From: Bugula neritina
Taxonomy: Eukaryota > Animalia > Bryozoa
Length of the DNA: 64,000 nt
Direction: 5' to 3'
Assembly (NCBI GenBank): GCA_964035545.1
Contig: OZ037766.1
Span: 9,042,722 to 9,106,721, forward strand
Each line of letters opens with the position of its first letter. Positions within the stretch are counted from its first letter, which is position 1. The position numbers and the translations under genes are program-made. Positions 12,943 through 63,214 of this stretch are shown here, one piece after another. Under the pieces are notes generated by a model, which had not been told where the DNA came from, did no database searches, and worked only from the letters and a program-made list of their open reading frames with translations.

Positions 12943-13183
<241 letters not shown>

Positions 13184-13500: not shown

Positions 13501-13739
13501 GCCATTTTTTAATAACCATATCATTTTCATAACGATAATTTAAATATTAGTATCACTCGTTAACCTAGGGTTTGGATTATAGTTACTATTAGTATTAGAT
13601 ATTGTTAATGTTATTAAATGCATATGCTTTGTTTATTGGTTTATATTGCTCAAGTAGGCAATTGTATTTTTTCACCTTGGGCCGCATTCGCATTTGATGA
13701 AATCATATTGATATTTCATTATTTGGTTCTATGCAGGTT

Positions 13740-14570
13740 GCGGCAATCTCAATCTGAACCTTACTCTTAGTCTTACTCCTAGTCTTAGTCTTACTCTTAG
13801 AGTCAGTTAGTAGTACTAGCAATAGTACCTGTACTAAGAGTAAGACTAATACTATAGTCATAGTGCTAGATAAACTTGAAGTTTTAGTTAAAGGTAGTAC
13901 TAGTAGTGCTTGACTATTAACTCTAAGTACTAAGTCTTACTTTTGAGTTCTAATAGTAATAGTACTTAGTACTTAGAGTTAGTAGTCTCGTAGTAGTAGC
14001 CTAGTACTAGTACTCAACTATTAGTAGTACTAGTAAACGTAGTGGCTTCAACTGAAACTTTAAGTTTAAGTTTATCTCAAATTTATGCTCTTAATATGAA
14101 TTTGACATAATGATAATCATAATGATAATAATTGATAATCAATATCAATGATTATCATAATAATAATCATCATAATCACTAAATCTAATCATAATGATAA
14201 TCACTAAGTCTTATCTGGTAATCAGTAAATTATCACTAAAAGTAAATGTAATTGCAAATGTTGAACTCGAAGTTAATGTAATCATTGTAATGCTTTTGCT
14301 AACTAAAAATTAATATCACTGACTATCACTATGACTATCAGTACGAGTATAACAGTAGCTATATAAGTATGACTGTGAAGTAATGTATGTGATTGATTAT
14401 CACTATCAGCCTCAGTTTTTGTTGTTTCTGATTATTTCAATTTAAGCTTAAAGTTTTGCACTTCAGTTACTGTTAGTTTTGCAGTTGAACTTACTTATTT
14501 ACTGCAACTATTATTATTGCTATTGGTATATAGTAATATACTATTGAGTATTGGTTATAATGTTAGACAT
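13740..14570. repeat. Degenerate hexamer-periodic quasi-palindromic tract 1 (UBE2O 5' region)
   Basis: ACTCTT AGTCTT ACTCCT AGTCTT AGTCTT ACTCTT from 13763; perfect 16-bp inverted repeat 13785-13800/13834-13849; many AGTACT/ACTAGT palindromes. Confidence 0.8.
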
Positions 14571-15906
14571 ATCGCGACTGAACCCAAGGCTACCCCTGGG
14601 CGCTAAGGCTTTTCAGTGTCTACTATCTAGCTTATGTACTATGAATGTAATAATAAGCATATCAACGTGCTGCTATAATAATCTATAATTGTACTTGTAA
14701 AAAGATCTCTTTATCAGAGCAGCTAATAACTGTTTTGTCATTTTGATGCTGTTTATTTCAAATTGCTTTCTCTTCAACAAAGAATCAACCTTGTCTTGTC
14801 ACTAATAATGGGTATATATATATTATATATACTCATTCTTCTTTGCACTACTAATAGTTGAACAATTTTACCAGAACCCATGCTTTGTTAGTACATTAAT
14901 GTCTTAAGACTTAACTTGAGTTTTAATTGTAAATGGGTCTAATATTCATGTTACATTCATTTATTAGCTATCACAATTATCATTTGGCTTATATTTGCAT
15001 ATGTTATATGTTTTACTATTACTAGTACTAATTTACTTTCATTGTTGGTACACAGAAGCTTTGTTTAATCATTGCATGCTACAATAAAAGAAACAGTTGA
15101 CTACACAAAGCAATATTTTCTGTAATAGTTAATGTATTAAAGTACATTTATGTGTAAATTCTGTTGATGTAGAAATTGTGAAATACTTTATATTAATTGC
15201 TAAAGAGTTTGTGCAACTGTATGTGCAATATTCATACTTATACTGAATGAAATATTTATGATCAGACAGAAATAGTCAGTTTAATAGTCATTTACTTAAG
15301 TAAAAATTAAGTAAATAAGTAATAAAATTAAGCCACCCTTGTGACTGTGAATCACTGATGGTCTCATGATGTTAATTTTTAATACAACATGAATTACCAA
15401 TAGTGTTAGTAATAGTTATGCTCTTTCTTATGCTGATGCTGATAGTGGTGCTTGTTCTGGTTGATACACTTGTACATTCACACTAACTGATTCGTTAATA
15501 GTATATCAAAGATTGACACTCATGTTCATGGTGCCCAGGTGTTTTTTTTTCAATAAAGCTGGTCTTTTAGAAGATGCAATTTATGTTTTTGGAAATAATA
15601 AAAATCTGGTTGCCATGGTTATACATAACTGTGATGTAGCTTCATATTTGTTTTCAAAATTGCATATCTAGGCTGTCAAAGATATGTGCAAAAAGTATTT
15701 AAATACTTTAGCAGAAGATATTGGACCGGCAAGTGTGCAACTATTTAAAATCTTGTTATAATCTCAATATTCAGTGTTTTTTCATTTTAAACAGATTTTA
15801 TAAAACTAACCTTTACTGTGAAAATGTTTTAACTATTTTGCAGATAAATTGTAATTTGTCCATCTGAAACATATGAAATACTGGCAACGAGGCGAAAGCA
15901 TTTAGT

Positions 15907-18900
15907 ATGGATAACCTGGAAAAGTCCGTTAAATATTTTGGAGAAGATATTATCAGTTTCATTGACTTGGACAATGTTACCGGTTTGAATAATAAAACAA
16001 ATAACCAGCATTATGGCCTAGTGATAGACAGCTATGCTGATAACGTCAGCGATGAAGAGATGTCTGATGATGAAAATGATATGAATCTGGAAGTGTCCAC
16101 TGCAAGAGTTGCATTTTATCCAAAAGGCAGGGCTTTTGTTCTTAATGAAGACCAGGTATGTGTTTTTATAATCATATTTATAGAACTTAATGAATATTGA
16201 ATGGATTTAAAACTGGTCTGTGTATGTATTTCTTGCAGCACCAACTCGAAGAGTTGAACTTTCACTCTTCTAAGAAGCTTACAAAGTATTTTACGTTAAT
16301 TTTTGACTCAATTGTGCTATTAATTATACCATTTGACATAAATGCTAATATAGTGCTTGCATTCACTAAAGTATGATTGGGGAGTGTCTAAGTAGATAAG
16401 CCCTTTTATTAACTTAAGTAAGATTTATGTATGTGTGACAGTGAAGGTCGTGAGATTACCAGATAATTTTATTAAGTTAGGCTAACAATTATGCAATAAG
16501 ATCAGTTGCTAAAAGTCACTTTTGTGTCATGGAGTGGTACGATTAAGGAATATATTGAAAAATGAACTAATAATTAGTAACTCATCAATTTTCAGTTTAT
16601 ACTAATAAATCAGCAGAATACAGATGTTAGTAAACATTATGCTACAGGCTAACCTCACTCCATGATGTTTAAAAACTAACATCTAAGTTTCAGTCTCTAT
16701 TTTAGCATGCAGCGTGCCTATAGAGACGCATTTCTCATGCCTAGAGTAACATGGTAGTTAATACTGCTAATATTGACTATTTTATGTAAAAGGAAAATGG
16801 AGTGATTTTACTTGCTGTCAATAAATGTTTTTACAATGACAAGATTTGATGTTGTGAAAGTCATCAATCGGAGAGACAATTCCTAGCAAAGCTTATATTT
16901 GAGCTTTTTAAGTGACTATAGTATCTTCATGAAAGCTGTATTTATAAATATCTAAGGGTTTATTCGAATTGTAGCTGAAGTTGGTTGACAGATCCCTGAT
17001 GCCAGGTGATGTCGTGAGACGTATGAGTGGCGGTGAAGTGAAAGGCTATGTCACTGATTGCCAGATGACTTGCTCTGTACTGATCAAAGGAACCAACAAA
17101 TTCATACATGGAGTTGATAGCAAACTATTTGCAGAAATTTCTAGTGTAAGTTTAATGACTATTGTAATATCCTTGTTAGCATATGCAAAGGTTAGATAGT
17201 TTATTGAAAGAAACTCAAAAAAGTATGGTGCATAATCTTAAAAAAGTCTTTGTTTCAGGCAACATTGCAATATTAAAGTTATAGTTTTTCAGTGTTTTTT
17301 TCTGTTTCCGATAGACATGTATTACTGCACTTTTTTGCAGAAGGTATTATAAGTCTGCAAGGACACTGGCTAAGTAGACAAGCTATTCAGTTATCAATAG
17401 CATCAAATCATATTAACTAGTTAATATAGCCATTTTTGTTTTTTATTTATAGGACATTCTTAATGAATCTGTGTACGTGGAGCTAGATGGGTGGATTGGA
17501 AAAACTATTGCAGGGCATTGTAAAACTAACTTATTGATCCAATTAGCTGATGGTGAAACGTAAGCTTGCTTTCAACTATATTATTCTAAACCACAGTAAC
17601 TGTCAAAACTTCAATGTTATTAGGATTAAAACAATGAAGACTTTATTTTCTAGCAGAATGTTTTCTTGTATTTTCAGGTTCAATGTTGATTCAAGTGAGG
17701 TGGAAGATTTTGAAGATTTGTTTGACAATGTTCTGAAAAAAGAAGAAGTAAGGCTTATTACAGTTTTGAATGTAGATAAATGTTTTTTGTTTGACTTACG
17801 CTTGTAACTCTGGAAAACAGTGTCAATGTTAAAAGATTTTGTTTTTTTTTCTGCAATGTAGTTGCCAATTTGCTTTAATATCATACAGATGAGTAAGGAA
17901 TGATATTTTGTTCGTTTCATTCTGATCCGATTAGACATCATTGCCAGAAATTGCTACTTGTTAAGAGGTCAAAGCATTGACTCTTTAAAGAACTAATCAT
18001 CACAGGCAATAATATTTAGATATCAGTTTTACTTATAGTCTTACTTGAGTGAAACATGTCTTTGTTGTATCTAAAATCAATGCTGTGGTGTGATGCCAAT
18101 GACCAAATACCAATTTTTCTAATTTGTTGAAAGTATTTTTTTTAGAGTTATCCAATTGAGCTAAAAAAATATTTGCGAATAAATTCACAAACATAACATT
18201 TTCTGACAGTTATATAATGTTCAGCTATATTATTCAGCATTTTATGGATAGCGATATTATGTTAAATGTTTAATATCGGGTCATCAAACTATGTCATGGT
18301 TTTAAGCTAATATATAGCTAAATCTATTGATACTCTATCCAGGAATCCCACTTTCTGTGCACCAGCTACTATAAAGGTCAGCAACTGAAAGGTCCATTAA
18401 GTAGTTTAAAGTCCGTCTGCCGAGTGACAGCTAAAGCTAAAAAGAAGAAGAAGAAAGAAGTTGTTATAACTGTGCTGGATGTATGTAAATGCATAACAAT
18501 TCATTATTGCTCCTTTTTACTATCTCTCAGTATGTTATATCGCCATCTTATAGTCACCTGGTGCCCAGTCAGGTCAACTTGTCTTACTCTTTCAAAGCTC
18601 TGTTGTAAATTGTAATAAGTTAATTTTATTTTCTACTCTTTTCTACCTTCTTCTCATTTTCTTTGTATCCCTTCTCTAGTATTGCTTTTCTCTTTCCGTG
18701 TTTTCTTTTTATTTACTCTATTTCTTGTTTACCATAATTTTATTATTTCACTACTATACTGCTTTGATTATATTCAATGCAAGTGTTATTTTATACAGCC
18801 CTTGTGCTAATCTTTAATTATATACATTTTATGGTTGTGGTTTATTTAATGATTAAGCAGTTTAATTGACATGAAAGTTTATGTTTAAAGTTATATAGTG

Positions 18901-45675: not shown

Positions 45676-45808
45676 CTAATCAGTTTCTTGAATGTTCCAG
45701 GAATTTCTCCATCAGCATCACCTTGTTAATGGCTATTATCAGCAACTGTCTATTTAATGTCATGTCTCTCTCAAGATGTAAATTAAATTATCAACTCATT
45801 AGCCCAAT
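45676..45808 (-). pseudogene. Decayed copy of the last exon of CRAL-TRIO copy C (homology continues through 3' UTR-derived sequence to about 45100)
   Basis: GTTGCTGATAATAGCCAT..GGAACATTCAAGAAACT aligns with 53003-53158 but has in-frame stops and deletions; 45420-45680 aligns with 52755-53005. Confidence 0.88.
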
Positions 45809-46151
45809 AATAATGCGCTATATATAGAATGTCATGTGACAGGAAGATAATGCAGCAGCATGCGACTGTATCTGCGGCCAGACATGCCTAAAGTAGCTGG
45901 AGATGGTGACTCATGCCAATGACTGGTAACTGACAATTAGTGACTCTCTTCTGTCCTTCATTTTTAACTGGGTAGCACCAGGAATTAACACAAAATTCAA
46001 ATTTCACCCGGCCATACATTACAATACTACCTGAACAAATAATTTTGATTACAGCAATTAATATGACTCAAATCAAAATTTGAAAAGAAAATTAAAAACT
46101 TGAGTGTATTGAAATTTCTCATCTACTACTTCAAATGAGTTGTAGAAGGTA

Positions 46152-48800
46152 TTAGTCGACATTGAGTCTTTTGAATATACCAGTCACACCACCAGCAGCA
46201 TCAGCATGCTTTTTGCTGTCACCAGAAACTGTCTCTACTTTCTTTATACCGTACTGTTCCCAAGATATAAATTCATCTTCACTAGCCTCCATAAGCTTGG
46301 CTACATCCTATTGGTATTATAAAAAACAAACTTGAAATCATTAAACTTCTTGTAAAAGTGTTTTTAAAATGCTAGAGTTTAAAGTAAAAACTTTTTTTTA
46401 CTTCTGAAAATTTGGTACAATATCAACTTCAGGTGCTTAATTTTTCTAAAGCATGTAAACTGTCAGAACAATTTCACTGCCTTGCAAATTCCTCCAGTTT
46501 TTAGTCAGCTAAATATTATTATTGCCCGATCTCTTATTTCGAAATCTTATAGTCTTTCAAGTTCTAAACAGTTAATAGTGAACTTTTTGATTGATACTAA
46601 TTTCGAATGATAAACTATAGGCCTTATAACAGCTTTACTTAAAGCTTTAACTGACTATAAAAAGTAAAAAGGTAGCCCTTACTTTGGCATGAGGTTCGAT
46701 ATCAAGTTCTCCACCAAGTTCTTTAGGAAGAATTTTTAGATCAAAATATTCTTTTAAGTATTCTGGTGTAGAATGTAGGTGAATCTAAAAGTATGATTTT
46801 CTAACATGACAACTGTTTAAAACATGATATTTTTGACGTTGACTACTTTAAGTAAAAATTGAAAACTACAAAAACGGCTCATTGCCTATTAGTTGTGTAA
46901 CATTTTGTCACTATGCAAAGCAACATTAAAACTATAAGCAACCTATTAATTACGAAGGCTTTATTCAAATTGCATCCATAATATTGTTGGGACTTTACAT
47001 AAGTTGGGAAAGCTTTTCCCTAATTCATGATAGGTTTGCATGTATCATCACAGCTATGCCAGCTATATTATGCTTTTTCCACACTCATTATGGTTACTAC
47101 ACAATAGCTTAACTTTTTGACAGGTATAACCCCCAGCATTTTCACCTATCTGCACACTTGCATCTTACAACTTGACACTTGAAACTACATGATGTAACGG
47201 TTTCACATTGCTACTTTCTTTCAGTCTGCGACAATAAATATTTCTATATAATTTAAAACACAACACATATAAGATTATACAATTTTTAATCAACGCTAAT
47301 AGAAGTTTCTAGAATAACACAATACTATTTACATGTTAAATTCAAATTTGACTTCGGTAACAGAGCATCATAATATTATTTAACATAAAGGCACAAGAAA
47401 ATTGTGACACGTGATAGTTAAGGTCTATTTTAGAAATTTAAAAAAAACTTACCCGTTTTCTTAGTTTTTCTGAGAGAAATGGTTTTGCTATTGCAAAAAC
47501 ATATTCAAAAAAGTGAGGCACATTGACGTAATGTACTTCTTTCAGTCTGCATGGCATTGCTTGCTGCAACAAGAATACAATTAAAATTTCTGCTCTTAAA
47601 AAAACTATTTAAAAATGAACTTTCACTAAGCTATGTGTTAATGTAGTAAATACTTTCAAACGCTAAAATATTTCATTATCATGTAATATACTTATACTAT
47701 ATACTTATTATATATGTTGTATATATTACTTACTGACTTCAGAGATAATGATTATATCTGCTAGCAAACATATATTACAACATGTTTAAATTCGTGTAAA
47801 AGCATTAATCATGCAAATATGGCTAAAGTGTTGATTTTCTTTCAGATGTATGTATAAACATAGTAGACATAATGCAATCCATACCTGTATCACCGATGCT
47901 ATCCTTTTAGCAGCAAATGGGTTAAAACTTTTAACATGATTCCAAGTAAGATTTGATAAGTCTGTCAGAAACACAAAACCATTTATCTGATTTTCTTCTT
48001 GCTGTACACAAAGAGGTAAATAAACTATTATAGTCAATATATTTCCAAAATCGTCAATACGCACACAGTACCTTCAACAGAAGTTTAAATAAAAAGAATG
48101 CACTATAGAAATGATAAACTAAAAGGCATATAGTTTTAGCCTTTTTGCAAAAAATTTTAAGCATGAAACATTTTTTATGTATATGCTTATAAATTATAGA
48201 GTATTTTTTGAGGTAAATAGATATAAACTACCTACCCTAACCATCTTTTCCATCATCATCATCATGCTTCCTCTAAACATGTCATCAACTGTAGTCGTAG
48301 CAGTGTCCCACAAGGCTGCAGTACAAAAAGATGGGGTTTAAATTCTAATAAATGAAAAGCTTTATGGAATAGTAAAGCGAGAAAGTTTTATTGAAAGCGA
48401 AAATAATTGATCTCATCAAATTAAAAATGAGCTAAAATTACGCTTTATAGCCCCATATATTCACTTATAAGATTACATTTCCATTATAAAGAATTTCCAA
48501 CACTCCATATTTATGTATCATTTAAATATTCATATACATCTTAATTCTTAGCTACTATCTAAAGGCTGTTGGAGGATTGTATACCCAAACACATTTGTTT
48601 TATAATAAATTTTGTGACCGCGAGTCCTGAATTATTTGGATTTCAGACTTTCAGTGACTAAGCCATGTGCTCCTGCAGAAGCCAATAACAGCAGCAATGG
48701 CAATGAAAGTTAGCCATATAAATAAGTATCAGTTTTATAATACCCTATACAATCAGAACCTATTGGAAATGTCATCTAATAAATATAATATAGATATCTG

Positions 48801-48849
<49 letters not shown>

Positions 48850-51221
48850 GTGTGTTGTGTGTTGTGTGTTGTGTGTGTGTGAGTGTTGTGTGTTGTGTGT
48901 TGTGTGTGTGAGTGTTGTGTGTTGTGTGTTGTGTGTGTTGGTACATGTACATGGAATCTACCTGCTCTTATCAGGATAGCTTGTGGATCTGTCTCTTTTA
49001 CCTTTGGTAATGAAATATAAAGACCTTTCTCATAATTCTCTTTGCTAAATGAAGGCCGAAACCTCTTGTAGAAGTCGGCAAATTCCACTCTGACTTCATA
49101 GTATCTAGTTTAATATGAAGCTTGTTGACTAAAATTCTCTTCACATAAAATTTCTTTACACATAACGATAGACCGTCTATTTCTTGTTTGTGCATAACTT
49201 GTGTGAGCAGCTATCAAATTTTATATATAGAAATGTTGTTCAAATTCATATTTATGCCTATTTAGCCTGTTTTTAGGTTGCTTTAGTATCTAATTACTTG
49301 ATATACTAGGTAAATATTATTAAGTTTATAGACTCTAGTAAATATGCGCTGACCACAGTGCTTTAAAAACTAAAATAGTTATTGATCATAATACAAGCAT
49401 TGCTTTGGAGCTAAAGCTATTGTATTACTTTCCAAAGAACTGAATTACTTTTATCCAGGGGTTAACTTTTAAACAGACCAAGTATGATGTTGGAGATTAC
49501 CTTTGCATCAATTAACACACACAATACAGATTAACAGCATAAATAGTATGTTGTTGAAATTATAGACCTTGCTTAGTTTTACCTTCGAATAAGAGTAGTT
49601 GTTCTCTCAATATCAAACTTTCTAGCTCTCAAAAACATCAACAAAAAATCATCATCTCGCGGGCAGTGAAGTGCTGCAAATATAACAATATTTGACTAAT
49701 ATGAAATAGTTGGGTAAAAAACGTGCATCTGTTTTAAAGTTTTTCTCCTGTGAAGACCCTTGTCCTGTTATTAAGCAGACTAAGAACTTTGCCCCTCCCC
49801 ATGGAGATTTGACTTGTGGGACAGAAGCAATTATTGTAACTGCAACACCATTGATTGAGAGAGCACTGGTACAAATGGAAATCTATTTCCATTAATAATT
49901 ACTGTTTTAGTAACTCTCACCTCCTTAATGGTGAAGCCATACACTTGGGAGGAAAGATAACTGGAAGGAATACTTTGGAGGAAAAAATAAACTTTTACTA
50001 ATTCTTAGAGTTTAGACTGCTGTAACTCACTGACTAAGCTTATAGTATTGGCGTTTCTACATTATGAAATGGCTTTAAGTAGTATAACCAAGGCCCCACT
50101 ACCAAGCCTATTTAACTGTGCAGACATAGCTTTGGTAGTGACAGGCTTATCAAAGACCCCAAACAAAACTCTAAGGCTTAGAGGCTTGAGAAAGGGCCTT
50201 CAGTTGTAGTTGTAAAGAGACATTCCTCAGTATAAGATATGTGTTTGGTGCATTTTACTTTATAATAAAGCACTGTGCCTTATTACAAAGTAAAATGCAC
50301 CAAACACACATATGTACTGAGACATGTCTCTTTACAACTACAACCGAAGGCCCTTTTCTGGTATCACAAACGACCTTGTAAAAACTTAAATTCATGACCT
50401 ATACCATATTAGGCCAGCAGCCCAGCACTCTAATCACTAAACTCTAAACAGTAGCTGCTGCATCTATGAAAACAGTGAGAAATATTTGAAAAGCTGCTGA
50501 TGCTTAAGCCAATAAAAGTTGCCAGTTTTCTGGCAGCTTTAAGTAATGTAACAAGCAACTTTGGCAGCTTAAAAATGCATCATTTCAGTACTTACTTGCA
50601 GCTTTCAAAATAATCAACTTGAACTTCAAACCAACTCCAAAAAATAAAAGATCACAAAACTTGCCAATTAACATTAAATTTTATACATGGTTATATGTTA
50701 AGATACTAGGCTAATTATTACTATATAGTTGCATATGCACTCATTTTATGCTGCATGAATAATTGTACAGAATGTTATATTAGTTTAAACTCTCTAAAGA
50801 CATTAATTTTTAATTAACGTGAGGTTTTACTTTTTGATTTGATGTTTATGGTTGAAGCCTAACTGCTTTGTTTTGATGCAAAATATATTGATAGAACTAA
50901 TGCTATATGAAAGTTCTGGTGCAAAGCCTGTTTGTTGCAATGGGTTCCAATTTGTAAAATGAATCTTAGGAAAGCTTATAATTGAAAGACTGTTTCAAGT
51001 TTTAAATGCAAAGATGAACAACTGCCTTATTTATGCTGTTGAATACTGGCAAGCTACTGCACAAGCAAGCATTGCAATATGCTAAATGTGGAAGCAACAT
51101 TCTTACCTAAATCTGATTCCAGAGACTTTCTCATTTTAGAAATATGCTTTTGCCGGTTTTCCACATCTTCATGGAGCTCTTCTTTTGCCTTCTTTTGAAG
51201 TGCCTGGCTAAGTGAGGTCAT
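46152..51221 (-). CDS. CRAL-TRIO lipid-transfer protein, copy B, 8 exons (51221-51107, 49673-49583, 49104-48962, 48315-48236, 48001-47885, 47563-47453, 46784-46683, 46307-46152), 304 aa
   Basis: Same exon sizes and phases as copy A except for +3 nt in exon 4; high nucleotide similarity to A, including intron flanks; intact frame. Confidence 0.94.
48803..48938. repeat. Compound (GT)n / (GTGTGTT)n microsatellite in intron 3 of copy B
   Basis: Visible. Confidence 0.95.
50190..50358. mobile_element. About 168-bp near-perfect palindrome (fold-back/MITE-like) inside an insertion of about 770 bp in intron 1 of copy B
   Basis: AAAGGGCCTTCAGTTGTAGTTGTAAAGAGACAT...TGTGTTTGGTGCATTTTACTTT pairs with AAAGTAAAATGCACCAAACACA...ATGTCTCTTTACAACTACAACCGAAGGCCCTTT; centre GCAC-T-GTGC at about 50274. 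Confidence 0.75.
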
Positions 51222-53002
51222 GTTGAGTAGACTGAGCAGTGACCAACCACACAGTACAGCTGTTAGCCTAGCTAATAACAGGGTAGCATGCAGTTGCACA
51301 ATACTTTATTGTTAACAAACATCTCTTAACAATACATATTTTTATCACATTACTTACAGCTCACCTATTTCCCATGTATTGATCTTGCTGGATATTTGTA
51401 TTCCAGATTTTTTTGTTAGCTAGTTGTGTAGTTGCCTTCTCTGTGAAGGCTGCATATTCTTGAAAAATGAGCAATATTTATAGACCAAAATTATATTCTG
51501 TGTAGGACAAATTAGCTATTTATTTTAAAACAATAGATAACTCATAAATTGCATAAGGTGCAGCGCCATTGATACACCAAAAGACTACAATTATATGCCC
51601 TTGCCCTTCCAACAAAACAACTCTGTTTAATCTTACAGAATAAATTTACAGTGAACACAAATCTATAATTTCTAGCTAAGCAGCTCATCTGCAATTCTAT
51701 AAGGAAATAGCTGCTCAAAACAATCCATTAATGAACTATATTTATAAGTCATTTGCCTTTGGGTGCAACTTTAAAGCACTGCATTTAGTAAATTCCTAAT
51801 GTTGTAACTTGTAATACATTTTTATACCAGGTGGTAAATCTTGTTGGAAGAAATAAAAAATACTGAAAGCACCAGTAGAAATTGATTCTGCTGGAAAGCA
51901 GTGTGATGTTTTGTTACATGCACTGCGTTTCCATGACTGCTGCGAATGGATGCTCATACCAAATAATTTGCAGTTTGTATCAACTTATGGTTTCATTGAT
52001 AGTAACTGTTCCCACACATCTAATAAAAACTCCAATCGTATAATGGAAACGCAGTGTAAATAACTCGATGTAAGTATTCTACCTGCTGATGGGAGAGTGG
52101 AGACAGGTTAATGTGTAATGATAAGTTAGCAGCCAACACATTTGAACTATGACCTATGGTTGTCTAGCAGTGTTGACTAAACATGGGACACTATTACTAT
52201 TATGGTACTTTATTAAAGAGCATGTAGTGGCATAAAAGCACTTAAATTAAAAAAAAGAAACCTCAAAATTAAAACTGAACATCACAGACACTAAATTTGG
52301 TCTAGACTAATTAGAAAAATGCAAAAAAAAATACATATGATCTAAATTTAATGGTTTTGAAGAAATATCTCATAAGCAAGCAATGTAGAAAATAGTAAAC
52401 TTTGCAAAAATGTTTCCAATTTTGCATGTGTCACAGTTGTTATTGTAAAAAGTAATAGAGATAAAAGTACTAAGACATAAAACACAGACAAATAGAGTGC
52501 ATATAAGAGATTCTTGAAAATGTGAGTATCTTATCATATAATATTATAAAATAACTGTTAGTTTTTTGGCCCAAAAATTGGACACTACTTGCTATAAAAT
52601 AAACATTTGTGAGACCGAAATAAATTGAGTAATCTAGTCAGTTTTTTTGCTAAAAGGTTTGATAAAAATGGTTTGATTTGAAGCTCTAAAATTAATTACT
52701 TGGTCCACTAAATTATGTGTAGTTAGAAAACAAAACCTTCAAGTATAAAAGTCGTACTCTGTATAATAATCACAAGAATTCTTAGTTTAATCGTCTCAAC
52801 AGTTCAATGGTATTGAAAAACAGAAGTCCTTTTAGTTTGGTATAGCCACATTTCTAGGACTGCTGGCTTGCATTTAGGTAATAGAATAACTGAGTGTATT
52901 GACACAAACTAGCACTTCTTAGTGATCAAAACTTGTCCTAAGCAGCATTGTTAATTCAGCATAACTTGGAATGTTAGATATAGATTCTAAGACTTCCTAG
53001 AA

Positions 53003-56000
53003 CTAATCACAGTTGAGTTTCTTGAATGTTCCGGTAATTCCTCCGGCGGCATCAGCTTGTTTATGGCTATTATCAGCAACAGCCTCTACTCGCTTGATAC
53101 CGTATCTCTCCCGAGATATAAACTCATCTTCACTATTTGCCATCTCCTCAGCCCAACTCTGCATCGAAATAATACCTCGATTGATTTCTTAGTTATAAAT
53201 AAAATGTTTTATAGAATTCACAATAAGCATCTTATCCATTGTGCATCCAGCTTATAATGAGCCCAATTCGGTGAGACTACACAGCTGTTTCAGCTTGAAG
53301 GAACCATTAAAATTACAGATTATTAAAAAAATTGAGCTTATTTTCATTGAACAACTAAAACGGCAGAGACATCAGAAGAAAACTTTTTAAACTCTAAAGC
53401 TTGTCAATCCGTGGATTTTAGTAGTTCACCCTATCAGTTAATACAAATTAACACTATTTGAATATTTAGTCAACTCTTGGGCAGTTTCTATAAACTCCAA
53501 AACATTCATAGAAAAGTATGGACGAATTGTTATGAGCTGTCCTACATATTATTATACTAGACACTTGCTATTAACTAAGGTAATATTGACAGCTACCTTG
53601 ACATAAGGCTCAGTAACAAGAGTGCCCCCTAGGCTCTCTGGCAGCATATCAACACTAAAGTGCTCCTTCAAGTACTCAGGTGATGAGTGAATGTGTATCT
53701 GCAATATAAAATACAGCGTGTCTATATTATCTAAAACTGTTATGTAACATGGTGCAGGTGGTGCATACCCTTACATTGAGTTACACAAGTTACTTCAAAA
53801 CCTTGCAAATGATAGCAATTGCTGAGCATCTACACATGTCATATATGACTTTTAGGATATTATACAATCGAAGAAAATGTGTACTGCAGCTGTAAGTGCT
53901 CTTACGGTTAACATACACTGCAGCACTACAGGTGTCTTACAAAAAAAGAATTTTTTTAAAGCATGTCATGCATAACGTATGAAAGATCAAAACACTTCTA
54001 ACTTACTCTGCTTTTCAGTTTGTCAGACATAAACTGCTTGACCATGGCAAACACATATTCAAAGAAATGAGGTACATTGACATAGTGTATTCCCTTAACT
54101 CTGCAAGGCATGGCATGCTGTAAAACACATCAATGCTTAGTATAATCATAGAAATGAGGGGTAATATATGTAATATAGCTCAATCACCTCAACTTGATAG
54201 AGTTATAAAGATGGCTATCAATTTTGAACCTATTAATATTATGTTAATCTATATACATCAGAGAGATTAATTTCAATCAGACAAAGAATTAAGTGATGTA
54301 GGATGTTGCATGATTTGTTTTCAAAAATAATCTTACTGTATGATTTATCAAAATTTGTCTTTAAACAATATTTTTATGACCTTGTTAAATATTGAGTTAT
54401 TGCAAAAACGATTCGGGCAAACAGTCAGCTCTTGTTAGTTTCTATCAAGTTTACATTTTTGTGAGGTGACCAAAAATGGAATATCTTGAAACAGTTGTTA
54501 TTATAAGTCAACATAACTTTAAAATGCAGTGTTGAAATAAAATAATCAAGTTAATTTTGAGCATCAAAGCCACAATTAATACTGCTCAACAAATGCATAT
54601 TAAAAAAGAGTAGAATTGATTAGGACACCAACCTGCAAGATAGCCATAGTGCGTTTAGCAATAAATGGATTCATACTCTTAGCATGAGCCCAGGTGAGTT
54701 GGTTTACATCCATAAGCATCACTATCCCATTCACCTGCACCTCTTCACTCTAGCAAATGAAATGTCAGCCTTAATATTCATAAACCTTTCGAATTACAAA
54801 TACTTTGAACATTAGGAAACACTGCGAACAGATTTTCCTGTTGATGGGTACACTGAACTCTGTGTATATAGAACCATAAAATAAATCCCATTTTACTACA
54901 AACTTATATTATCAATTTTACAGTATAACTTTTCAGCCCAAATCAGGCGTTATTTTATTGGATAATTCTTAGAATGAAACTGCATGTGTATTTGAAGATT
55001 AGAAGATTATATGAAATTTTAAATGCAAAATTGTAAGTCTTTACCCGGATTACTTTCTCGACCTGCATAATGTTTGCTCTGATTACATCATCAAGGCCAC
55101 CAGTACTTGGATCCCAGAGAGCTGAAAATAACAACACATGTATTTTACTGAAACAAACAATCATACTAGCTACACTTGTATGACAGTAAAAAAAATTGAA
55201 TTATTTTTAAAGTTACCACTATTAACAAAATAAATGCATGTATAAAAAATTATCTAAATAACACAAAAAGGAAAAAGTGAAAAATTGAAATAAAAGCTAT
55301 ACATGATAATCTACAGCAAATATTAAACTTATTATAACTATTTACATCTTTAAGAAGTAGCTGATTTGAAAGTAATTCTAGCAAAAACATGATTTAATTG
55401 AAATTACAATGATACACGCACATCTCTTTAATGTTTAAAAATGATGCTTCATCGACTTTAAAGTTGAATATTCACATTTTTGCTTTTATACCTGAACTCA
55501 AACTAAACAGCCATATGTGAGTAATAATATAATACCTAGCCTAACCAGCAACGGCACAGGATCAGTTTCTTTTGACTTGGGCAACTTAAGGTACATTCCC
55601 TTTTCATATTTTTCTTTTGCAAACGACGGGCGATACTTTTTGTAAAAATCTGGGTATTCTATTCTGACCTCATAATATCTAGAGAAATTGAAGAATAAAT
55701 TATTATTTCAACCTTGAAACAGGGCACATCATCTTCATGCATATGAAACAGCAAACTCACAAAAACTGATTGTTTACAACCAACAATAGCACAACATTAA
55801 ACCTCAAAACCAAATATACCTTCTAACGAGCTTGGCAGCATTTTCATAGTCAAACTTACGAGCTCTCAAAAACATCAATAGGAAGTTATCGTCTTCAAGG
55901 GGACAGTGCAAAGCTACAATTATACTATATATTATGAAGTTGAATGAAAGTAAATGCTGGTTTATATAAATTTAATGCCACCAACAATGATGCAGATAAA

Positions 56001-56315
56001 CAGCTGGAAAATAACCACCTTATAAATAACAATATGCTAAATATCTGCATTGAATTGAAGATGCAAAATAAGTTTTGTTTTGTACTTTGGTAACACAGTG
56101 TATGTTCTTTTTACAGCTGTCAGCCATTGCATACTTGCATATGTTAGTGAAATGAATATTTATATGTACAATCTATAGATGTTTATAAAATAGATTTTAC
56201 CCAAATCTGACTTCAACAGGTCCCGCAATGCTTGAATGTCTCGATCTCTCCATTCCACTTTTTCACCTAGCTCATTTTTAGCCTTTTCTTGCAAGGCTTC
56301 ACTTAAGCTAGACAT
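53003..56315 (-). CDS. CRAL-TRIO lipid-transfer protein, copy C (most divergent), 8 exons (56315-56201, 55913-55820, 55678-55536, 55121-55045, 54749-54633, 54117-54007, 53698-53597, 53158-53003), 304 aa
   Basis: EKAKNELGEKVEWRDRDIQALR, DDNFLLMFLRARKFDYE, QVNGIVMLMD, MPCRVKGIHYVN, MLPESLGG and GTFKKLNCD; same intron positions as A and B. Confidence 0.94.
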
Positions 56316-56629
56316 ACCTGCCTTATTACGCAACTATTTTATCTAGAACAAATCAGTTCAGGATACAAGTTTAAAAGTACTGTACTTAGTAGTACAGCAT
56401 GGTAAGTCTCCCATTAAACTTTCAAAGATATAAGTAATACATTTATGTTCTTTGTTCCTGACATATATTAGTGAAGTATCTTGACCAATAGAATTTGTGC
56501 GCAATACTGTTGCCTGATGGAATAGTTATAGTGCTTTAAACCACATGTCTATGTCAGCAGGCTTTATGACTATTGCTGAAAATTTAGCTACAAGTCTAAA
56601 AACAGCTCAACGGATCAAATTTAATAATA

Positions 56630-57480
56630 TTAAATACATATATATTAGAGATAAGTATTACATTTACTGTACTACTATTAGTATTAGTATAAGTATATCT
56701 ATTTTCACATTGACTAAGTTTTAGAATAACTTATAATAATAATGATAAATATAAGTAAAGTTATATGATAAGTATACATTATAATAACATTAACAGTAAC
56801 ATTACTATTAGAAATAATAAATTAAATATAAATAATAATCATAATATTAATATGAAATCAGAAAGGCCCTCGACCGAGGTACACTTACACACTGACAACT
56901 GTAATACTTCAAAGTCTTTATAGTTCATACCGATAATGATAGCAAGCATAATAATATTAATAATATCATTAGACCTAGTAATAGACATATTTATAGTGAT
57001 AGTATAACTATAAGTTAAGTATAAGTAATAGTAATACTAAAAGTAATAGTAATAACAATAAGTAACACTAACAGTAACACTAATGACTAATAGTAATACT
57101 AATAGTAATACTAATACTCATTACAGTAATACTAATAGAACAATAGTAATACTATTAGTATTACTATTAGTATTAGTAATACTAATACTAATAGTAATAG
57201 TGATAGTAATACTTATAGTTATACCAATACAGTAAGGCTAAGTCTAAGAGTAATACTAATACTCTAAGACTAACACTAAGTCTAACAGTAACACAGTATC
57301 AGTATGACTATGAGTAATACTAATACTAATAATATTACTATTAGACATTAGTATTACTAAATTACTATAAGTATTACTGTAAGTGTAAGTGTAATAGACT
57401 AACAGTTATAGTAATAGTAATACTAATATTATTAATATTACTCTATAAGTGTTACTACTATTAGTATTACCATTAAATTT
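56630..57480. repeat. Degenerate hexamer-periodic quasi-palindromic tract 2 (5' region of CRAL-TRIO copy C)
   Basis: AGTAAT AGTAAT ACTAAA AGTAAT AGTAAT, AGTAAC ACTAAC AGTAAC ACTAAT, and inverted ACTATT AGTATT runs. Confidence 0.88.
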
Positions 57481-57484
57481 AATA

Positions 57485-57750
57485 GGCTTGCCCAGTTCAG
57501 TGATATTGCGCACGTAATAATTAAAATTAACGGGCCACTGACTTTGGCCTCGACCGTCTAACCTGGTGATCTCAGCTAGCGGTGATAGGTGCTGAGAGAA
57601 CAGTTTAGCAGGTTATAAGTTGTTGAATTTATATTGGATATAATTATCAACGGTAACGGTAAAAATACCTACAGTGTGTTAGCTTTGTCTCCTAAGTTAG
57701 CGCGCGTTAATATTGCATGGATGCCATCCGTGGTTAGGAACAGGCGTAAT
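57485..57750. promoter_or_regulatory. Putative bidirectional CpG-enriched promoter between divergent CRAL-TRIO copy C (-) and SIVA1 (+)
   Basis: About 270-bp GC/CpG-rich island (TGCGCACG, CGGGCC, TCGACCG, GCGCGCG, ATTGG box) roughly midway between two head-to-head start codons, each preceded by a candidate splice acceptor. Confidence 0.6.
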
Positions 57751-58600
57751 ATTTTAATTATAACACTAACAGTAACTGTAAGTCAGTGGTAGTATATGTA
57801 AGTGATTATGATTAGGATGATCGTAAAGTTAAAGATCTTTATAATCATGATGATATTAATTGAAATTGTAATAATTGTTATCTATAAGTATAACTAATAA
57901 CATTAAATATAATTATAAGTAATACTAATAAGTAATAAAGTATAATTTAAACTATAACTATAAGTATAACTATAAGTCATAAGTGATTACTATAACTATA
58001 AGTATAAATATTAAATAACTTAGTATTACTATTAGTATTAGTATAACGTTAACTATAAGATTAAGTATAAGAATAAGTATAAGACTAAGTAAATAACTAT
58101 AAGTGTAACTCATAAGTTCAATTTGAGCTAATGCTAATAGTAATACTAATAGTAATAGTAATACTAATAGTATAACTATAAGATTAAGTACTATTAGTAA
58201 TACTGAGTATTAGTATTACTGTATTACTATTAGTACTATAACTCTAAGACTAAGTCTATAACAATAACTATAAGTATAACTATAAGATTAAGTATAATAA
58301 TAAATATAAGTAAGTAAATGTATTAATGTAATTTTATTATTTATCTTAAATTTAATTGAAATATTGAATTTAATATTGGTATTTAAATTAGTGTTAGGTA
58401 CTGTTACGCTGTGACACATGCTCATACCATAGTGAGTTATATTAATCTCAAATTTATGTGGACTATCACTATGTATTGAGTTTTACTTTTACTGATATTC
58501 ATAAATCATGACATAAGCATAATGATGATGTAAAGGGCAAACTCTAGCACTAAAAGTAACTGTTAAAAATCAAACTAAGCATACGTTATTGATAGATGTT
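57750..58600. repeat. Degenerate hexamer-periodic quasi-palindromic tract 3 (5' region of SIVA1)
   Basis: AGTAAT ACTAAT AGTAAT AGTAAT ACTAAT AGTATA ACTATA AGATTA from 58139; ACTATA/AGTATA runs. Confidence 0.88.
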
Positions 58601-59118
58601 ATAGTTTTCTAATATTGTACTCTTAAATTTGAAAGTTACATGTTGAAAGTTTCAAGTCTCACACACAGGTTCCATATGCATTTTAGTTATTATGGGAAAT
58701 AGCTTAAATAGGTGTTGGTTTTTCTCTGGTTGTACATAGATTTAATTTCTGCAGTTTTTTATGTTGCTATAGGTTAAGGAAAGGGCTTCATTTTTTTTAA
58801 TTCTTTGGGGAAAGTTAGCAAAGTAGCCAATGCCTGTGTTCCTTTCTTTTATTCTGCAGGTGCATCAATTCCATCACTATTTGATCTTCAAAGACAACAC
58901 ATATTTAATTACTAATCGACACAAACTTGTATACCATTCCAATTTTGTGTAACTGCTGCAACTATAATTTTAATTATACCAGCATATGAACTGCAAATTG
59001 CTCCATATTTGTAGATTTGTTTTAGATTCTCCTTCAAAGTTTTGTGATATTTGAGGCTACAATTTTCCTTTGAATATAGCTTTGAGCTGAAAAATCTTCA
59101 ATACTTCCTTACTCCAAT

Positions 59119-61036
59119 ATGCCAAAAAGAAGTTGTCCTTTTGCCGAAAGCCATGCACCACAAATGAAGAATCACATTGGCTTAAAGGAGATTAATTTAG
59201 GTGTGACGAGTCATGAAAGAATGGAGGAAGTATATGGTAATTTCAGTCTACTTTAACTTAATTTATAATTTATAAACTGTGTCTTTGTTTTTGAAAATTA
59301 ATTCAAATTTTGATATAAATTATGTTTACATATATTTTTAGATAGAACACTGAAACTGCTTTATGACGGTGCCCGAAAGGAAAATTCATGTCCACAAACC
59401 CCTACAACTTACCCTGTCATTGTTCAAAAGCTGAATGTTCTTCCTGGCCAGCGTAAATTGAATTTTTATGGACAACTAGATGGCTGCTATACATCTAACC
59501 AGTGTGAGCTATTGCTTATAAATTTGTTGATAAAATTATTTTTGTGATCGAATTTAGGAGTCGTTCTCTATTTTCAGTGTCAAAACTGTGAAATTACAAT
59601 AAAAATAAATGAAATCTGAAGTATCACCACATTGCATAATGCTACAGTATGTTGGGCACTTTTGGAACATAAAGTTTTTTATATGTCACGACTTTCTTTA
59701 AAAAGCTTTTATATCAATTAGTGTAGCATAATTGCAGATTGAAGATTTTCAACAATAGATGATTTAAAGTTAAGCATGAATTCCAACATTAACAGTGTGA
59801 TTAAGAGATATGCCATTCCTACTGTGTACCAAATTGATTTTTTAGTAAAATTATGTTTTTATAGGTAAATCTCAGAAGAAATTTTTGCCGATAGCCTGCA
59901 GTTCGTGCCAGAGTATTCCATCTGTACCATCAACATGTCATTTCTGTGAGAAATGTTTATGTGAGATGTGTAGCCGTCTGTGCAGTGACTGCAACTACTC
60001 ATTCTGCTCAGACTGCTCCAGTCCCAGGTTTGTTATTTTTAATTTGTCATGTTCATGCTTTATCTCAAACCTTTTTTTGAATGCTGCAAATGTCCCACTT
60101 TTGTGATGAAACCAATATCCTAAACATTGACTAATGTAACTGCATATTATTATTTTTGCACAGTGTTTCTGACCCTGCAAAATATCCAGGGTTCATTATC
60201 TCATTACTAAAACCAGTAACCACCAAAAGTGATCGTGGTTTTTGCTGTACCTTTTTATATAGACAAACCTCAATTTCATTCAGTAATATATCAATAATAT
60301 GCAGCTACATAATCTAATATTTAGTATGTTGATTTCATCACAAAAACTGAGCCATTTGCAGCAGTAAAGCAAAGACTGGAGATGGTTCTTAAAATCGGCT
60401 TATTTTTATTGTCTGATCAGTTTAGGAATTATGTATTATACAAGTAAACAAGCACATTTTCTCACAGTTTTTCCTATCGGTCAAATTCGCAAGCACAGTG
60501 AAAAACTTTTCTCTGATTCTATTAAACAAAAATTTGTCATTTACGGAAATGTCTATTTTATTCATGCTGAAATGTATCACTGTGCTTTTTTTCTATGCTA
60601 TCCTTTTCACGAAACTGTTTCTATGCTGATAGACCTTCATCAGACAAGAAGCAGGCGTTTAGTGAGCCTAAAATACATATGGTTGCATTAATTCTAGTTT
60701 TTAGGCACTTGAGTCAGTAATTTTCTAGCCACCATTAGAATATATAAAACTTAGTTGCAATAAGGATCGGAGTTATCCACTTTTTATAATAATATATTGA
60801 TTTAGTAATTATGTTACCTTGGTGTACTTTTTGTTGCTTTGCATCAAATATGACTTGGAATATTCTTAGTTCTTACATCTTACTATTTGATACTAATATT
60901 ATGTTAGCTGTGTCGCTCAACCCATTATCATACATTCATTTTAATATTTGTGTAAGCATTATAACATTATATATAAATGTTTTGTAGATATGAATCTCAT
61001 GATGTGGAGAAATCTATATGCCTAAGCTGCATATGA
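59119..61036 (+). CDS. SIVA1: Apoptosis regulatory protein Siva, 4 exons (59119-59236, 59342-59503, 59865-60027, 60988-61036)
   Basis: N-terminus MPKRSCPFAE..QMK.HIG..E..EEVYDRTLKLLYDGA matches the Siva MPKRSCPF signature; C-terminal Cys-rich zinc fingers CSSC..CHFCEKCLCEMC..CSDC..FCSDC..ICLSC; phases consistent. Confidence 0.93.
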
Positions 61037-61629
61037 TGCAATCACTTGGAGCAAAAACTTTCAACTCAGTAAATAATTCTAGTCATTTCAGTAGTAAAGA
61101 TTTTTTCCAAGCGCTTCATTTATAGTACAGTCTTCATTTCATAAATCACCGATTTTTTTCAAAGAAATTCTGGAAAACTTTTTAAAAGCCATTTTATGTA
61201 TTTCTTTTTCTTGTTTTATCACCTTTCCATATTTTATTGACACTTGTACACGTGTATATTTTTGAAATTGGTGTAACAAAATGTTTTTGGTTTATTCCCC
61301 GGTTAATAAACAATTTTATATAAATCATTTCAATTTTTAAATTCCACCACATTTGTTGAGTGATCATTATTAATATACTTAAAACATAGAGTTTCATACT
61401 TTCACTTTTGTTGCTCTTACTTTTACTTCTAATAAATTCCACTTTCTTTCAGACATTTACTTTAATACTTTAATATGGCGATTGAAAAACACTGCAACCC
61501 ATTAAAAATAAAATAAAGATATGTCATGATTTGTTAAATACAAGTCATAATATTAGTGAAAGAATTACAATTAACAAAAGTTCACAAATCAACAGGACTC
61601 CAGTTATTTCAACTTGTTTTCTTGCACGA

Positions 61630-61885
61630 AATGTGGGGTTATCCTATCCCCAGTATTTTATAATCGCGCCGATAAATCTCTGAGTGTGCTTTTATTGGAT
61701 AACAACTTTTCGATTGCAATCGAAACTTTTTCATTTCCATTGTGTTCCCACTCATCGACCACACTTTCATTTTCAGGGATTCATATCTTTTATAATAAAT
61801 TTAATGCTCGTAAATGATGAATCTTGTGATAAAAAGCGATGCATATTGCAATTAATGCTATTCTTATAGACTGGATAATCTAATA
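61630..61885 (+). promoter_or_regulatory. Putative CpG-enriched promoter of the DDX46-like gene with a perfect 18-bp palindrome TTTCGATTGCAATCGAAA (61708-61725)
   Basis: ATCGCGCCGAT, ATTGG box and several CpGs between the SIVA1 3' end and the first coding exon. Confidence 0.55.
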
Positions 61886-62660
61886 GTGGTAGTTATAGTA
61901 ATATAAATATATAATTTTTACTTATAGTTATACTTATACTTATACTTATAGTTATAGTTATACTAATACTTTAAGTTTAACTTTAACTTAGTCTTATAGT
62001 TCGGTTATACTTATAGTTAATGTTATAGTTATACAATTATACTTATAGTTATACTTATTTAGTTTTATATTTACGTTTAGCTTTAGTTTTACAATTACAT
62101 TACGCTTACAGGATTACTGATTACTCATTAGACTTACTCTTAGTCATTGGTGATTAGTCATTAATATCACTTACACTTACAGTAACTCACAGTATAACTG
62201 TGAGTATTGTGTTTAGTCATTATGATTATTCATTATTGTTAGAGTTACTACTAGTAGTAGTACTAGTACTAAACCTAGTCATAGTGATAGTGGCTAATAA
62301 TTGCTCTATAATTAAGTTATACTTATACTTTATAGTTATAGAATCTTATAGTTATAGAGTAACTACTTACAGTTAGTGTTACACAATGACTATAAGTATA
62401 AGTATAATAATAAGTTTAATAAAATTTAATTTTATTGTTATTAATTTTAATTATATGTATATAGTTATATTTATTGTAACATCGACAATATATTAATTAT
62501 AATATAAATATAATACTAATACTAATAATTATACTATAACTAAGAGTGAGTAGTAGTAGTAGTAGTATTTGACTTAGTAATTACACGTACTAATTAATAT
62601 TATGATAATGATTATTATTTATTTATTATCATTATCTTACATAAATATGATTAGATCAGC
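61885..62660. repeat. Degenerate hexamer-periodic quasi-palindromic tract 4 (5' region of the DDX46-like gene)
   Basis: Eleven in-phase units from 61920: ACTTAT AGTTAT ACTTAT ACTTAT ACTTAT AGTTAT AGTTAT ACTAAT ACTTTA AGTTTA ACTTTA. Confidence 0.88.
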
Positions 62661-63214
62661 ATTTAAACTTAACATCAAATGTTGCAAAAGAATTAATACA
62701 AATGACAATATGCATACAGCTCTTTTCACTACTATTATTTAAAATTTTACTCAGTTTAATGATAGCATAAAATCTATGCTCTACCAGTTTTAATTTAAAT
62801 TTTAAAACTTTTCTCTGTTTCAACATAGTGATACTGGGCATTCTGAAGTAAAGCTAACTGCCATTCACATTCATAATTTCATTGTTATAGCTGATATTTA
62901 TAATCGTGGTTCCTAGTAGTAGAACTGATGTTAATATTTTATTATACCCAAACTTGAAATATAAATTTTACTTGAAAATAAGATTAAAGGTTGAGTTGTA
63001 CTGCAACTTGTAGTAGCAGAGAAATAAAGCTGTAGTAAACTTAGTAGTACTGGATTTGAAATAAATTCATGCTGCAATAGTATTGGCAGTAGCAGAAGTA
63101 TTGGTCTATTCTATGGTCTAGGTCAAAGATGTTATATTATGTTAATTTTTCATTGCCATTTGTAGAAAAAGAACTTTAAGTTTAAGGTTATAGTCAGCAA
63201 GTCATCAACTTAAC

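Follow-up and report, generated by a model that had tools for sequence, protein, structure and literature searches.

Promoter-proximal tracts of Bugula neritina carry a six-base flip-duplication signature, possibly left by hairpin-forming breaks

The hAT transposons (Ac/Ds, Hermes, TcBuster) leave footprints in which the target duplication is retained and the junction base is changed to its complement. Those of Ac/Ds are palindromes whose central base is complementary to the one adjoining the element (PMC5873905). TcBuster prefers transcription starts (PMC3499496). We analyzed a 64,000-nucleotide stretch of Bugula neritina DNA (the window) and found four tracts that resemble these footprints: a duplication is retained, a junction base is complemented, palindromes are centred on a single base, and the tracts lie at the 5' ends of genes. 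However, the target-site duplication (TSD) of the cited hAT elements is 8 bp, with a 7- or 8-nt scar, whereas the tract scar is 6 nt and implies a stagger of 7 bp. hAT families with 7-bp TSDs are mentioned as Repbase annotation (PMC4455052). In addition, hAT footprints are heterogeneous and include products with both junction bases complemented, whereas the tracts hold one uniform product, apparently stacked by hundreds of events per locus at thousands of promoters.

P-nucleotides made by RAG and Transib are complementary to the terminal base and form palindromes with a 0-nt centre; in contrast, such palindromes are not enriched in the tracts. P-type elements favour gene starts, and their excision leaves pieces of terminal repeat and no complemented base. 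The 7-bp TSD consensus of Galileo (P superfamily), GTANTAC (PMC4168063), is also the commonest lattice 7-mer, but in the tracts C-TAnTA-G is as common as G-TAnTA-C. MULE, Transib and RAG systems form hairpin intermediates on flanking DNA that host enzymes open, as in the mechanism proposed below; however, more than 90% of Muta1 excisions are precise (PMC5499845).

Three further systems are similar in part. C. elegans PATCs are abundant, periodic, A/T-rich non-coding DNA in germline-active genes; they arose by mutation and turn over quickly (PMC4947018; bioRxiv 10.64898/2026.08.08.743475). Their period is 10 bp, they contain A/T runs, they stem from a Helitron minisatellite, and they have a shown function; they protect germline genes from silencing. 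In contrast, the tracts have period 6, scarce runs and no source element, and are restricted to the 1 kb or so that follows the promoter; the tracts had neither a 10-bp periodicity (lag-10 z from -0.1 to -3.9) nor enriched A/T runs. SD-MMEJ and Pol-theta snap-back repair place templated inverted bases beside short duplications (PMC5728401), but known junctions vary in size and the tracts are only 5+1. Microsatellites and cryptic simplicity share the short period, rapid length change and drifting units; microsatellites favour identical neighbours and the tracts avoid them. Literature searches found no published description of the 6-base flip-duplication pattern.

Four tracts between promoter cores and first coding exons

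The four tracts were where the original prediction had placed them. A lattice model recovered segments at 13583-14529, 56610-57475, 57756-58565 and 61859-62639, with no other segment in the window; 200 kb of locally shuffled DNA gave 0. Lag-6 identity exceeded that of dinucleotide shuffles in every tract (z = 13-15; individually 13.6, 15.2, 13.1 and 13.0), with harmonics at 12, 18 and 24 that faded by about 30, and 6 was the most frequent A[CG]T spacing in 4/4 tracts. The refined lattice is (A-S-T)(A-W-T)n, where S is C or G, plus a minority T-S-A type. The centre is C or G at about 92% of lattice positions, and CpG is depleted threefold. Long A/T homopolymers had been described as scarce. Relative to shuffles, this holds for runs of at least 4 in three tracts (3 vs 8.0, 6 vs 12.6 and 6 vs 10.7); the UBE2O tract is the exception (8 vs 8.9).

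Every tract lies between a CpG-richer core and a first coding exon (Table 1), and RNA contigs back the SIVA1 and CRAL-TRIO exons. The cores are CpG-elevated as predicted, but the enrichment is modest (91st-96th percentile of 300-nt windows). The core shared by CRAL-TRIO and SIVA1 can be aligned with the sister lineage, whereas its tract flanks cannot at 80%. The only DREF/BEAF-like motif signal in the cores was a weak CGATAA excess, which is confounded by selecting cores for CpG. Spliced gene models were searched one exon at a time. Splice acceptors are used in RNA, and 5' RNA pieces (about 26 nt for the SIVA1-like gene; also 6 nt) extend beyond the placed exons; no strong splice donor was found for CRAL-TRIO or ahead of the UBE2O tract. 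The tracts may lie in cis-spliced first introns or in outrons removed by spliced-leader trans-splicing. ASNS and two CRAL-TRIO paralogues in the same window have no tract.

Table 1. Positions of tracts, putative promoter cores and nearby exons in the window
Feature	Position	Strand	Basis and remarks
Putative UBE2O promoter core, CpG-richer	13200..13735		CpG 93rd percentile; conserved in sister lineage
Flip-duplication lattice tract upstream of UBE2O	13583..14570		Lattice and lag-6; orthologue in sister-lineage contigs L039/L040, many 6n indels
UBE2O first coding exon, ATG 15907	15844..16155	+	ORF and splice signals; UBE2O Pfam matches on later exons
CRAL-TRIO gene first coding exon, ATG 56315	56201..56342	-	RNA contig X9 no. 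25; CRAL_TRIO Pfam on a paralogue
Flip-duplication lattice tract, CRAL-TRIO side	56610..57480		Lattice and lag-6; density highest beside core
Putative divergent CRAL-TRIO/SIVA1 promoter core, CpG-richer	57480..57755		CpG 96th percentile
Flip-duplication lattice tract, SIVA1 side	57756..58600		Lattice and lag-6; tail aligned to L031
SIVA1-like gene, exons about 59080-59235, 59341-59503, 59865-60025, 60990-61345	59080..61345	+	RNA contig X9 no. 28; Pfam Siva on 95%-identical P0001
Putative DDX46 promoter core, CpG-richer, about 300 nt past SIVA1 3' end	61560..61860		CpG 91st percentile; 6% divergence in sister lineage
5+1 event site	61782..61793		Window C-TTTTA-T, sister lineage C-TTTTA-G-TTTTA-T; unpolarised
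Flip-duplication lattice tract upstream of DDX46	61859..62660		Lattice and lag-6; first 400 nt aligned to L031
DDX46 first coding exon, ATG 63215	63166..63231	+	Sequence; N-terminus same as Watersipora DEAD-box gene in L033

Raw-data contigs and sister-lineage tracts in separate assemblies rule out an assembly artefact. A fraction of 0.94 of sampled words was found in one sequencing run, 12-14 thousand sister-lineage contigs from three DNA runs map onto the tracts, and the orthologous tracts can be read in the separate assemblies. A coding origin (Ser/Thr alternation) was rejected because every frame is disrupted by stops and by 4-, 7- and 8-nt phase shifts, and none of the tracts has an ORF. 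An array of U1 sites was also rejected: GTAAGT is only about 3-fold enriched in the tracts, and the direction of transcription does not fix the orientation of the units, which face either way. Branch-point-like TACTAAY is plentiful, simply as a lattice component.

The 5+1 growth rule

As read from their sequence, the tracts grow by 6-nt insertions, each made up of five copied bases and one base complementary to a neighbouring C or G. The rule is S-X5-S'-X5-S: at a site S1-X5-S2 the 5-base spacer is duplicated, and the C or G that separates its two copies complements either S1 or S2. X5 is five bases, the first and last complementary, mostly T-nnn-A. The insertion product recreates its own target, so the lattice is self-propagating. 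The flipped-base repeat with X of 5 nt occurs at 14.36/kb, compared with 0.05/kb in background, and gave no signal at X of 3, 4, 6, 7 or 8 nt. The ends of X were complementary in 227/229 cases (T..A 218, A..T 9). X5-N-X5 occurs at 34/kb and X5-NN-X5 at 0.25/kb, and neither a 7-nt class with both bases complemented (S'S') nor a plain 5-bp duplication class is present in tracts. Palindromes with a 1-nt centre and arms of 9 or more are about 30-fold enriched (3.07/kb vs 0.10/kb), in part because they are built into the lattice. One palindrome, in contig L005, has arms of about 250 bp around a 1-nt centre.

The order of C and G follows from the rule with no fitted parameter. The alternation was 0.664, and a growth model without a free parameter gave 0.669. 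C/G triples occurred at 0.425/0.490/0.085, compared with 0.420/0.499/0.081 in simulation (n = 539). On non-overlapping triples the flip model fits (p = 0.56), random C/G order is ruled out (p = 9e-17), and a first-order neighbour preference fits poorly (p = 0.008); a conditional-probability test by itself does not separate flip growth from Markov preference (p = 0.18).

These results support the view, one of two originally offered, that the tracts are scars of breakage and repair. Plain slippage is insufficient, as had been argued: same-base triples (CCC and GGG) make up 8.5%, compared with 25% at random and 98% in a slippage simulation. Two specifics of that view did not survive. A 6-nt staggered cut with fill-in would yield identical neighbours, which is the depleted class. 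Micro-inversion, suggested by TAGTA/TACTA, is unneeded, as alternation is similar in fillers without that symmetry (AAT 67%, ATA 60%, AAC about 80%).

Change between lineages and distribution of tracts

We found that the tracts change rapidly between the lineage of the window and its sister lineage. Indels occur at 3.9 per 100 aligned bases in tracts and 1.05 outside (about 4-fold). The predicted 6-bp excess was present: multiples of 6 account for 17/59 (29%) of tract indels and 12/193 of others (p = 1e-5). There are about 0.07 six-multiple indels per unit, compared with 0.078 substitutions per base, so a low event rate suffices. Substitutions (0.09-0.125 in tracts vs 0.078) are not suppressed relative to ordinary introns. 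C/G mismatches are in excess (19/147 in tracts vs 70/1440, p = 4e-4), although some may be misaligned indels. Only one clean informative 5+1 insertion separates the lineages (Table 1); its added G complements the left C, and its polarity is undefined.

In a random 200 kb, 4/4 clear tracts were directly upstream of a first coding exon. The signature marks gene starts from sequence alone. Extrapolation from this sample implies roughly 1,000-10,000 tracts genome-wide. The tract-bearing genes sampled are mostly housekeeping; the names NAA60, LIG3, SPTLC1, MTAP, PMS1, ZRANB1 and calcyphosin were assigned by reading translations of neighbouring exons. As anticipated, no single satellite or transposon consensus emerged. 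An all-versus-all comparison of 24 tracts and their flanks found no shared termini or conserved flanks, only lattice matches and one LTR beside two tracts. Mobile elements interrupt some tracts.

The signature appears to be lineage-restricted. Tracts are absent from the orthologous promoters in Watersipora and in one further species (two outgroup promoters), and 28 kb of Watersipora DNA contained 0 flipped-base repeats. Watersipora SIVA1 as a query matched only itself, and scans of metagenome contigs with SIVA1 exons and the lattice pattern found nothing. The CRAL-TRIO and SIVA1 start codons are 2.8 kb apart in Bugula, compared with 0.8 kb for the same gene pair in another species, and 5+1 growth appears to explain much of this expansion of 5' non-coding DNA.

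Mechanisms of tract growth

We suggest, with a probability of about 0.5, that the tracts are stacked scars of a hairpin-forming, hAT-like break of fixed geometry in promoter-proximal DNA. The fixed 5+1 size points to a geometry set by an enzyme. Most simply, the flank would be nicked one base in, and the ends of a 7-bp staggered break or target duplication would then be sealed as hairpins, as happens with hAT transposases. Hairpin opening would leave short overhangs centred on the complemented base, which could anneal where X5 has complementary ends, and the central G:G or C:C mismatch would be settled in either direction. The candidate enzyme, a transposase of the hAT type or a protein domesticated from one, would act where chromatin is open, immediately downstream of promoters active in the germline. 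On this view the tract would be a mutational scar and not a conserved code. Copies of hAT with open frames are present in the genome, among them copies at C1:30462367, C3:28905230 and C5:1593917; three of the hAT copies have equal scores. MULE domains with open frames are present too. However, about 330 kb of examined sequence, some 20 tracts included, yielded no element that combines terminal inverted repeats with a 7-bp TSD. Footprints of Tc1/mariner or Harbinger elements (TA or TWA target) were rejected, as the period 3 or reverse-complement insert pairs that they predict were not seen. If such breaks made the tracts, the role of promoter-proximal breaks in shaping introns becomes testable, and the tracts offer a fossil map of germline-open promoters. 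The enzyme, if found, would be a nuclease or transposase that is directed to promoters and whose repair product is unusually uniform.

A more specific version is tentative. A host enzyme, for example a hAT-type protein that has been domesticated and tethered to the promoters of housekeeping genes, might make the 7-bp staggered hairpin break in the germline without any mobile element. Each scar would recreate its target, and 5' non-coding DNA would be made at thousands of promoters and pushed outward. The CpG-poor lattice might perhaps be co-opted as a chromatin boundary or a landing pad for mobile elements.

Our results might also indicate, though we think this rather doubtful, that the same rule is carried out by polymerase fold-back, of the snap-back SD-MMEJ or Pol-theta type, where promoter-proximal DNA is nicked or broken. 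The nascent 3' end would pair X5 with X1 over a 3-base loop, copy the complement of the upstream C or G, and realign 6 nt back. This accounts directly for complementary X ends in both orientations and for the C/G preference, needs no transposon, and uses very short inverted primers, such as TA/AT, for which snap-back synthesis is documented (PMC5728401). However, loops and realignments should differ in size, yet 4-, 6- and 7-nt spacers gave no signal, and SD-MMEJ is conserved, yet the orthologous promoters in two other species lack tracts.

It is unlikely that slippage and selection maintain the tracts as a set of protein half-sites or as a DNA-mechanical element, whether A-G-T and A-C-T half-sites that alternate as in an extended heat-shock element, a boundary for nucleosomes or methylation, or a signal like that of PATCs. 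The strict location at 5' ends of mostly housekeeping genes, the CpG depletion and the retained C/G centre are consistent with this reading, and PATCs show that periodic intron DNA can be functional (PMC4947018). However, substitutions are no lower than in ordinary introns, indels are 4-fold higher, the spacer drifts freely, mobile elements interrupt tracts, and orthologous promoters function without one. Selection also gives no reason for alternation at 2/3, the value that the mutational model predicts. The original prediction of a selected element thus found no support in the substitutions, the fast turnover or the two other species, but a tract may have been co-opted later.

It is very unlikely that C was mutated to G in place (by a deaminase or abasic-site bypass) at A-C-T or T-C-A sites on slippage repeats near transcription starts. 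Of the C/G mismatches enriched between lineages, 16/19 are in A.T or T.A context, which speaks for this reading, but alternation could then reach at most 50%, not 66%, and the expected C-to-T decay is not evident, with AAT/ATT at only 3.5% of centres. Least probable is slippage-driven cryptic simplicity, or a decayed internal minisatellite of one transposon family, which the triple statistics refute as the main cause and to which the lack of common termini and the variation of units between and within tracts are also opposed, although tracts match one another at 65-85% on both strands, TRF reports arrays of period 6/12/18, and one sister-lineage tract contains an (AGT)n expansion.

Four tracts at gene starts

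The four tracts of the original prediction were confirmed, coordinates included. The pooled tracts follow a lattice, (A-S-T)(A-W-T)n with S being C or G, and a model of this lattice, applied to the whole window, picked these four segments and no others; shuffled DNA gave it no segment. Lag-6 identity was 13 to 15 SD above dinucleotide shuffles, a period-6 signal beyond composition. The tracts are not errors of the source assembly (G000; 216,009,554 bases in 321 pieces, with the window at C2:9042722-9106721): 94% of sampled words were present in one run, each of three DNA runs gave 12-14 thousand contigs on tracts, and orthologous tracts were found in separate assemblies. tzBugNeri2.1 (Bugula neritina) has 20,264 genes, a longest scaffold of 35.64 Mb and an N50 of 24.8 Mb (PMC11480708). 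Two predicted features held in part. Long A/T runs are scarce in three tracts, not in the UBE2O tract, and the adjacent putative promoter cores are CpG-enriched, only moderately (91st-96th percentile).

Features and their coordinates
Feature	Location	Remark
UBE2O tract	window 13583-14570
CRAL-TRIO-side tract	window 56610-57480
SIVA1-side tract	window 57756-58600
DDX46 tract	window 61859-62660
(AC)n run	window 12946-13182	237 bases
Acceptor-like site	window 13725-13740	conserved in sister lineage
Segment missing from sister lineage	window 14657-15271	616 bases
CRAL-TRIO paralogues	window 44500-56350	- strand
SIVA1 and DDX46, Bugula	window 59080-64000	tandem
SIVA1 and DDX46, Watersipora subatra	L033:1-18312	head to head
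Clean informative event	window 61782-61793
Near-perfect palindrome	L005:1340-1890 (G000:C6, near 15177160)	arms ~250 bp, 1-base centre
LTR element	L016:3635-6712 (G000:C2:14003635-14006712)	3.1 kb; TG...CA ends, 4-bp ATAT duplication
LINE-like junction	L043:1-330	sister lineage
hAT dimerisation-domain matches	G000 C1:30462367, C3:28905230, C5:1593917	563-aa open frames

With one tract as query, we found 2,786 candidate places. A random sample of 20 pieces of 10 kb held four clear tracts, which extrapolates to about 1,100-10,200 genome-wide. All four lay between a core and the first coding exon, the placement predicted from the window; we put the odds of this by chance at ~4 in 10,000, assuming that the 1.5-kb stretches preceding start codons cover ~14% of the genome. 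Of eight loci picked by their tracts, three had a start exon of a housekeeping gene that could be recognised at a distance of up to 1.5 kb (the other five were not assessable), and another tract lay 2.4 kb upstream of the gene for a proteasome subunit. In most tracts, motif density peaks beside the core and declines toward the coding exon. Among the window genes, ASNS and two tandem CRAL-TRIO paralogues had no tract.

RNA contigs confirmed the SIVA1 and CRAL-TRIO acceptors, leaving 5' pieces of about 26 and 6 bases unplaced; no good splice donors were found for two genes. The tracts may lie in first introns or in outrons. Database searches with spliced gene models took each exon separately. 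The three tandem CRAL-TRIO paralogues, with a tract only at the copy nearest the promoter core, may have a single promoter or 5' exon in common. An acceptor-like site immediately precedes the UBE2O tract, which may partly be a 5' UTR exon. The (AC)n run beside the UBE2O core is missing at the matching place in the sister-lineage contig L039.

Growth by complemented duplication

We found that the tracts grow, beside gene starts, by duplication of 5 bases together with a complemented C or G. The resulting motif, S-X5-S'-X5-S (S', complemented base; X5, 5-base spacer), occurred at 14.36/kb in tracts and 0.05/kb outside, only at a spacer of 5 bases, and not at all in 28 kb of Watersipora. The ends of X5 were complementary in 227/229 cases (T..A, or less often A..T). 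Because only one size is permitted, we infer a geometry set by an enzyme.

A simulation with zero free parameters, in which every new unit receives the complement of one neighbour, gave 0.669 alternating C/G pairs (observed, 0.664) and alternating, mixed and same triples of 0.420/0.499/0.081 (observed, 0.425/0.490/0.085; n = 539). On non-overlapping triples, this growth model fits (p = 0.56), and random C/G order (p = 9e-17) and a first-order alternation preference (p = 0.008) do not. A weaker conditional test pointed in the same direction and was not significant. Palindromes with a one-base centre were ~30-fold enriched at long arms, a count partly inherent to the lattice. The near-perfect palindrome inside a tract in L005 is recent, since ~190 arm bases are identical.

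Change between lineages and species

We assign the other runs aligned to the window to a sister lineage because they differ from it by ~8% in non-coding DNA and have differences in common. Substitutions per site came to 0.078 outside tracts (18,365 aligned bases) and 0.09-0.125 inside (1,506 bases); indels per 100 bases came to 1.05 and 3.9, respectively. Multiples of 6 made up 29% of indels inside and 6% outside (p = 1e-5), with gap placement in repeats being uncertain. C/G mismatches were 13% of differences inside tracts and 5% outside. The single clean informative event, unpolarised, reads C-TTTTA-T in the window and C-TTTTA-G-TTTTA-T in the sister lineage. Six-multiple indels ran at ~0.07 per unit, close to the per-base substitution level, and the tract process therefore need not be frequent. 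By eye, no terminal repeats were seen on the 616-base segment. The CRAL-TRIO tract in L043 continues into a LINE-like open frame, which either was inserted there or reflects a misjoin of the sister-lineage assembly.

The CRAL-TRIO/SIVA1 interval, 2.8 kb with 49 motifs in Bugula, is 0.8 kb with 0 motifs in a second species (SRR22824305; one promoter). In Watersipora, the upstream region shared by SIVA1 and DDX46 had no tract (one promoter). That interval holds a Tc1-like relic and a minisatellite, and no acceptor is evident directly before the DDX46 start codon.

Candidate mechanisms

We give about even odds (roughly 0.5) to a hairpin-forming, hAT-like break with a 7-bp stagger. Such a stagger would leave both opened hairpins with overhangs centred on the complemented base, and these would anneal where X has complementary ends, adding exactly 6 bases. 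Ac/Ds repair joints are palindromic about a central base that complements the element-adjacent one (PMC5873905), and one hAT element prefers transcription starts (PMC3499496). Copies of both hAT and MULE elements in the genome have open frames; no element with a 7-bp TSD was found in ~330 kb. Three equal-scoring hAT copies are likely a recently active family. The tracts work like hAT footprints but lack two of their features, an 8-bp target duplication and a mixture of products, and for this reason we do not class them as such; known hATs leave mixed footprints, whereas double-complement and plain-duplication classes are absent from tracts.

Fold-back by a polymerase is a doubtful alternative. 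That the tracts are a selected element, as the original prediction also allowed, is less probable still; their growth is fast and without sequence constraint. In-place C-to-G mutation is very unlikely. Slippage or a decayed element is the least credible, copying predicting 98% same-base triples, in line with the earlier claim that plain slippage does not readily give alternation.

By the features tested, the tracts are not a microsatellite, PATC or transposon-derived satellite. The Galileo target, GTANTAC, is the commonest lattice 7-mer, but excision in the Galileo family is not known to complement a base. A literature search, with most subscription journals outside its coverage, found no published description of the pattern.

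The LTR element in L016 sits inside a tract upstream of an SPTLC1-like gene, and an LTR 70% similar to it adjoins a tract in another stretch (L003); this family may favour promoter-proximal DNA. Seven small contigs (C66, C72, C85, C110, C114, C175 and C295) carry compact proteasome genes with in-frame TAA/TAG and are probably ciliate sequence remaining in the assembly.
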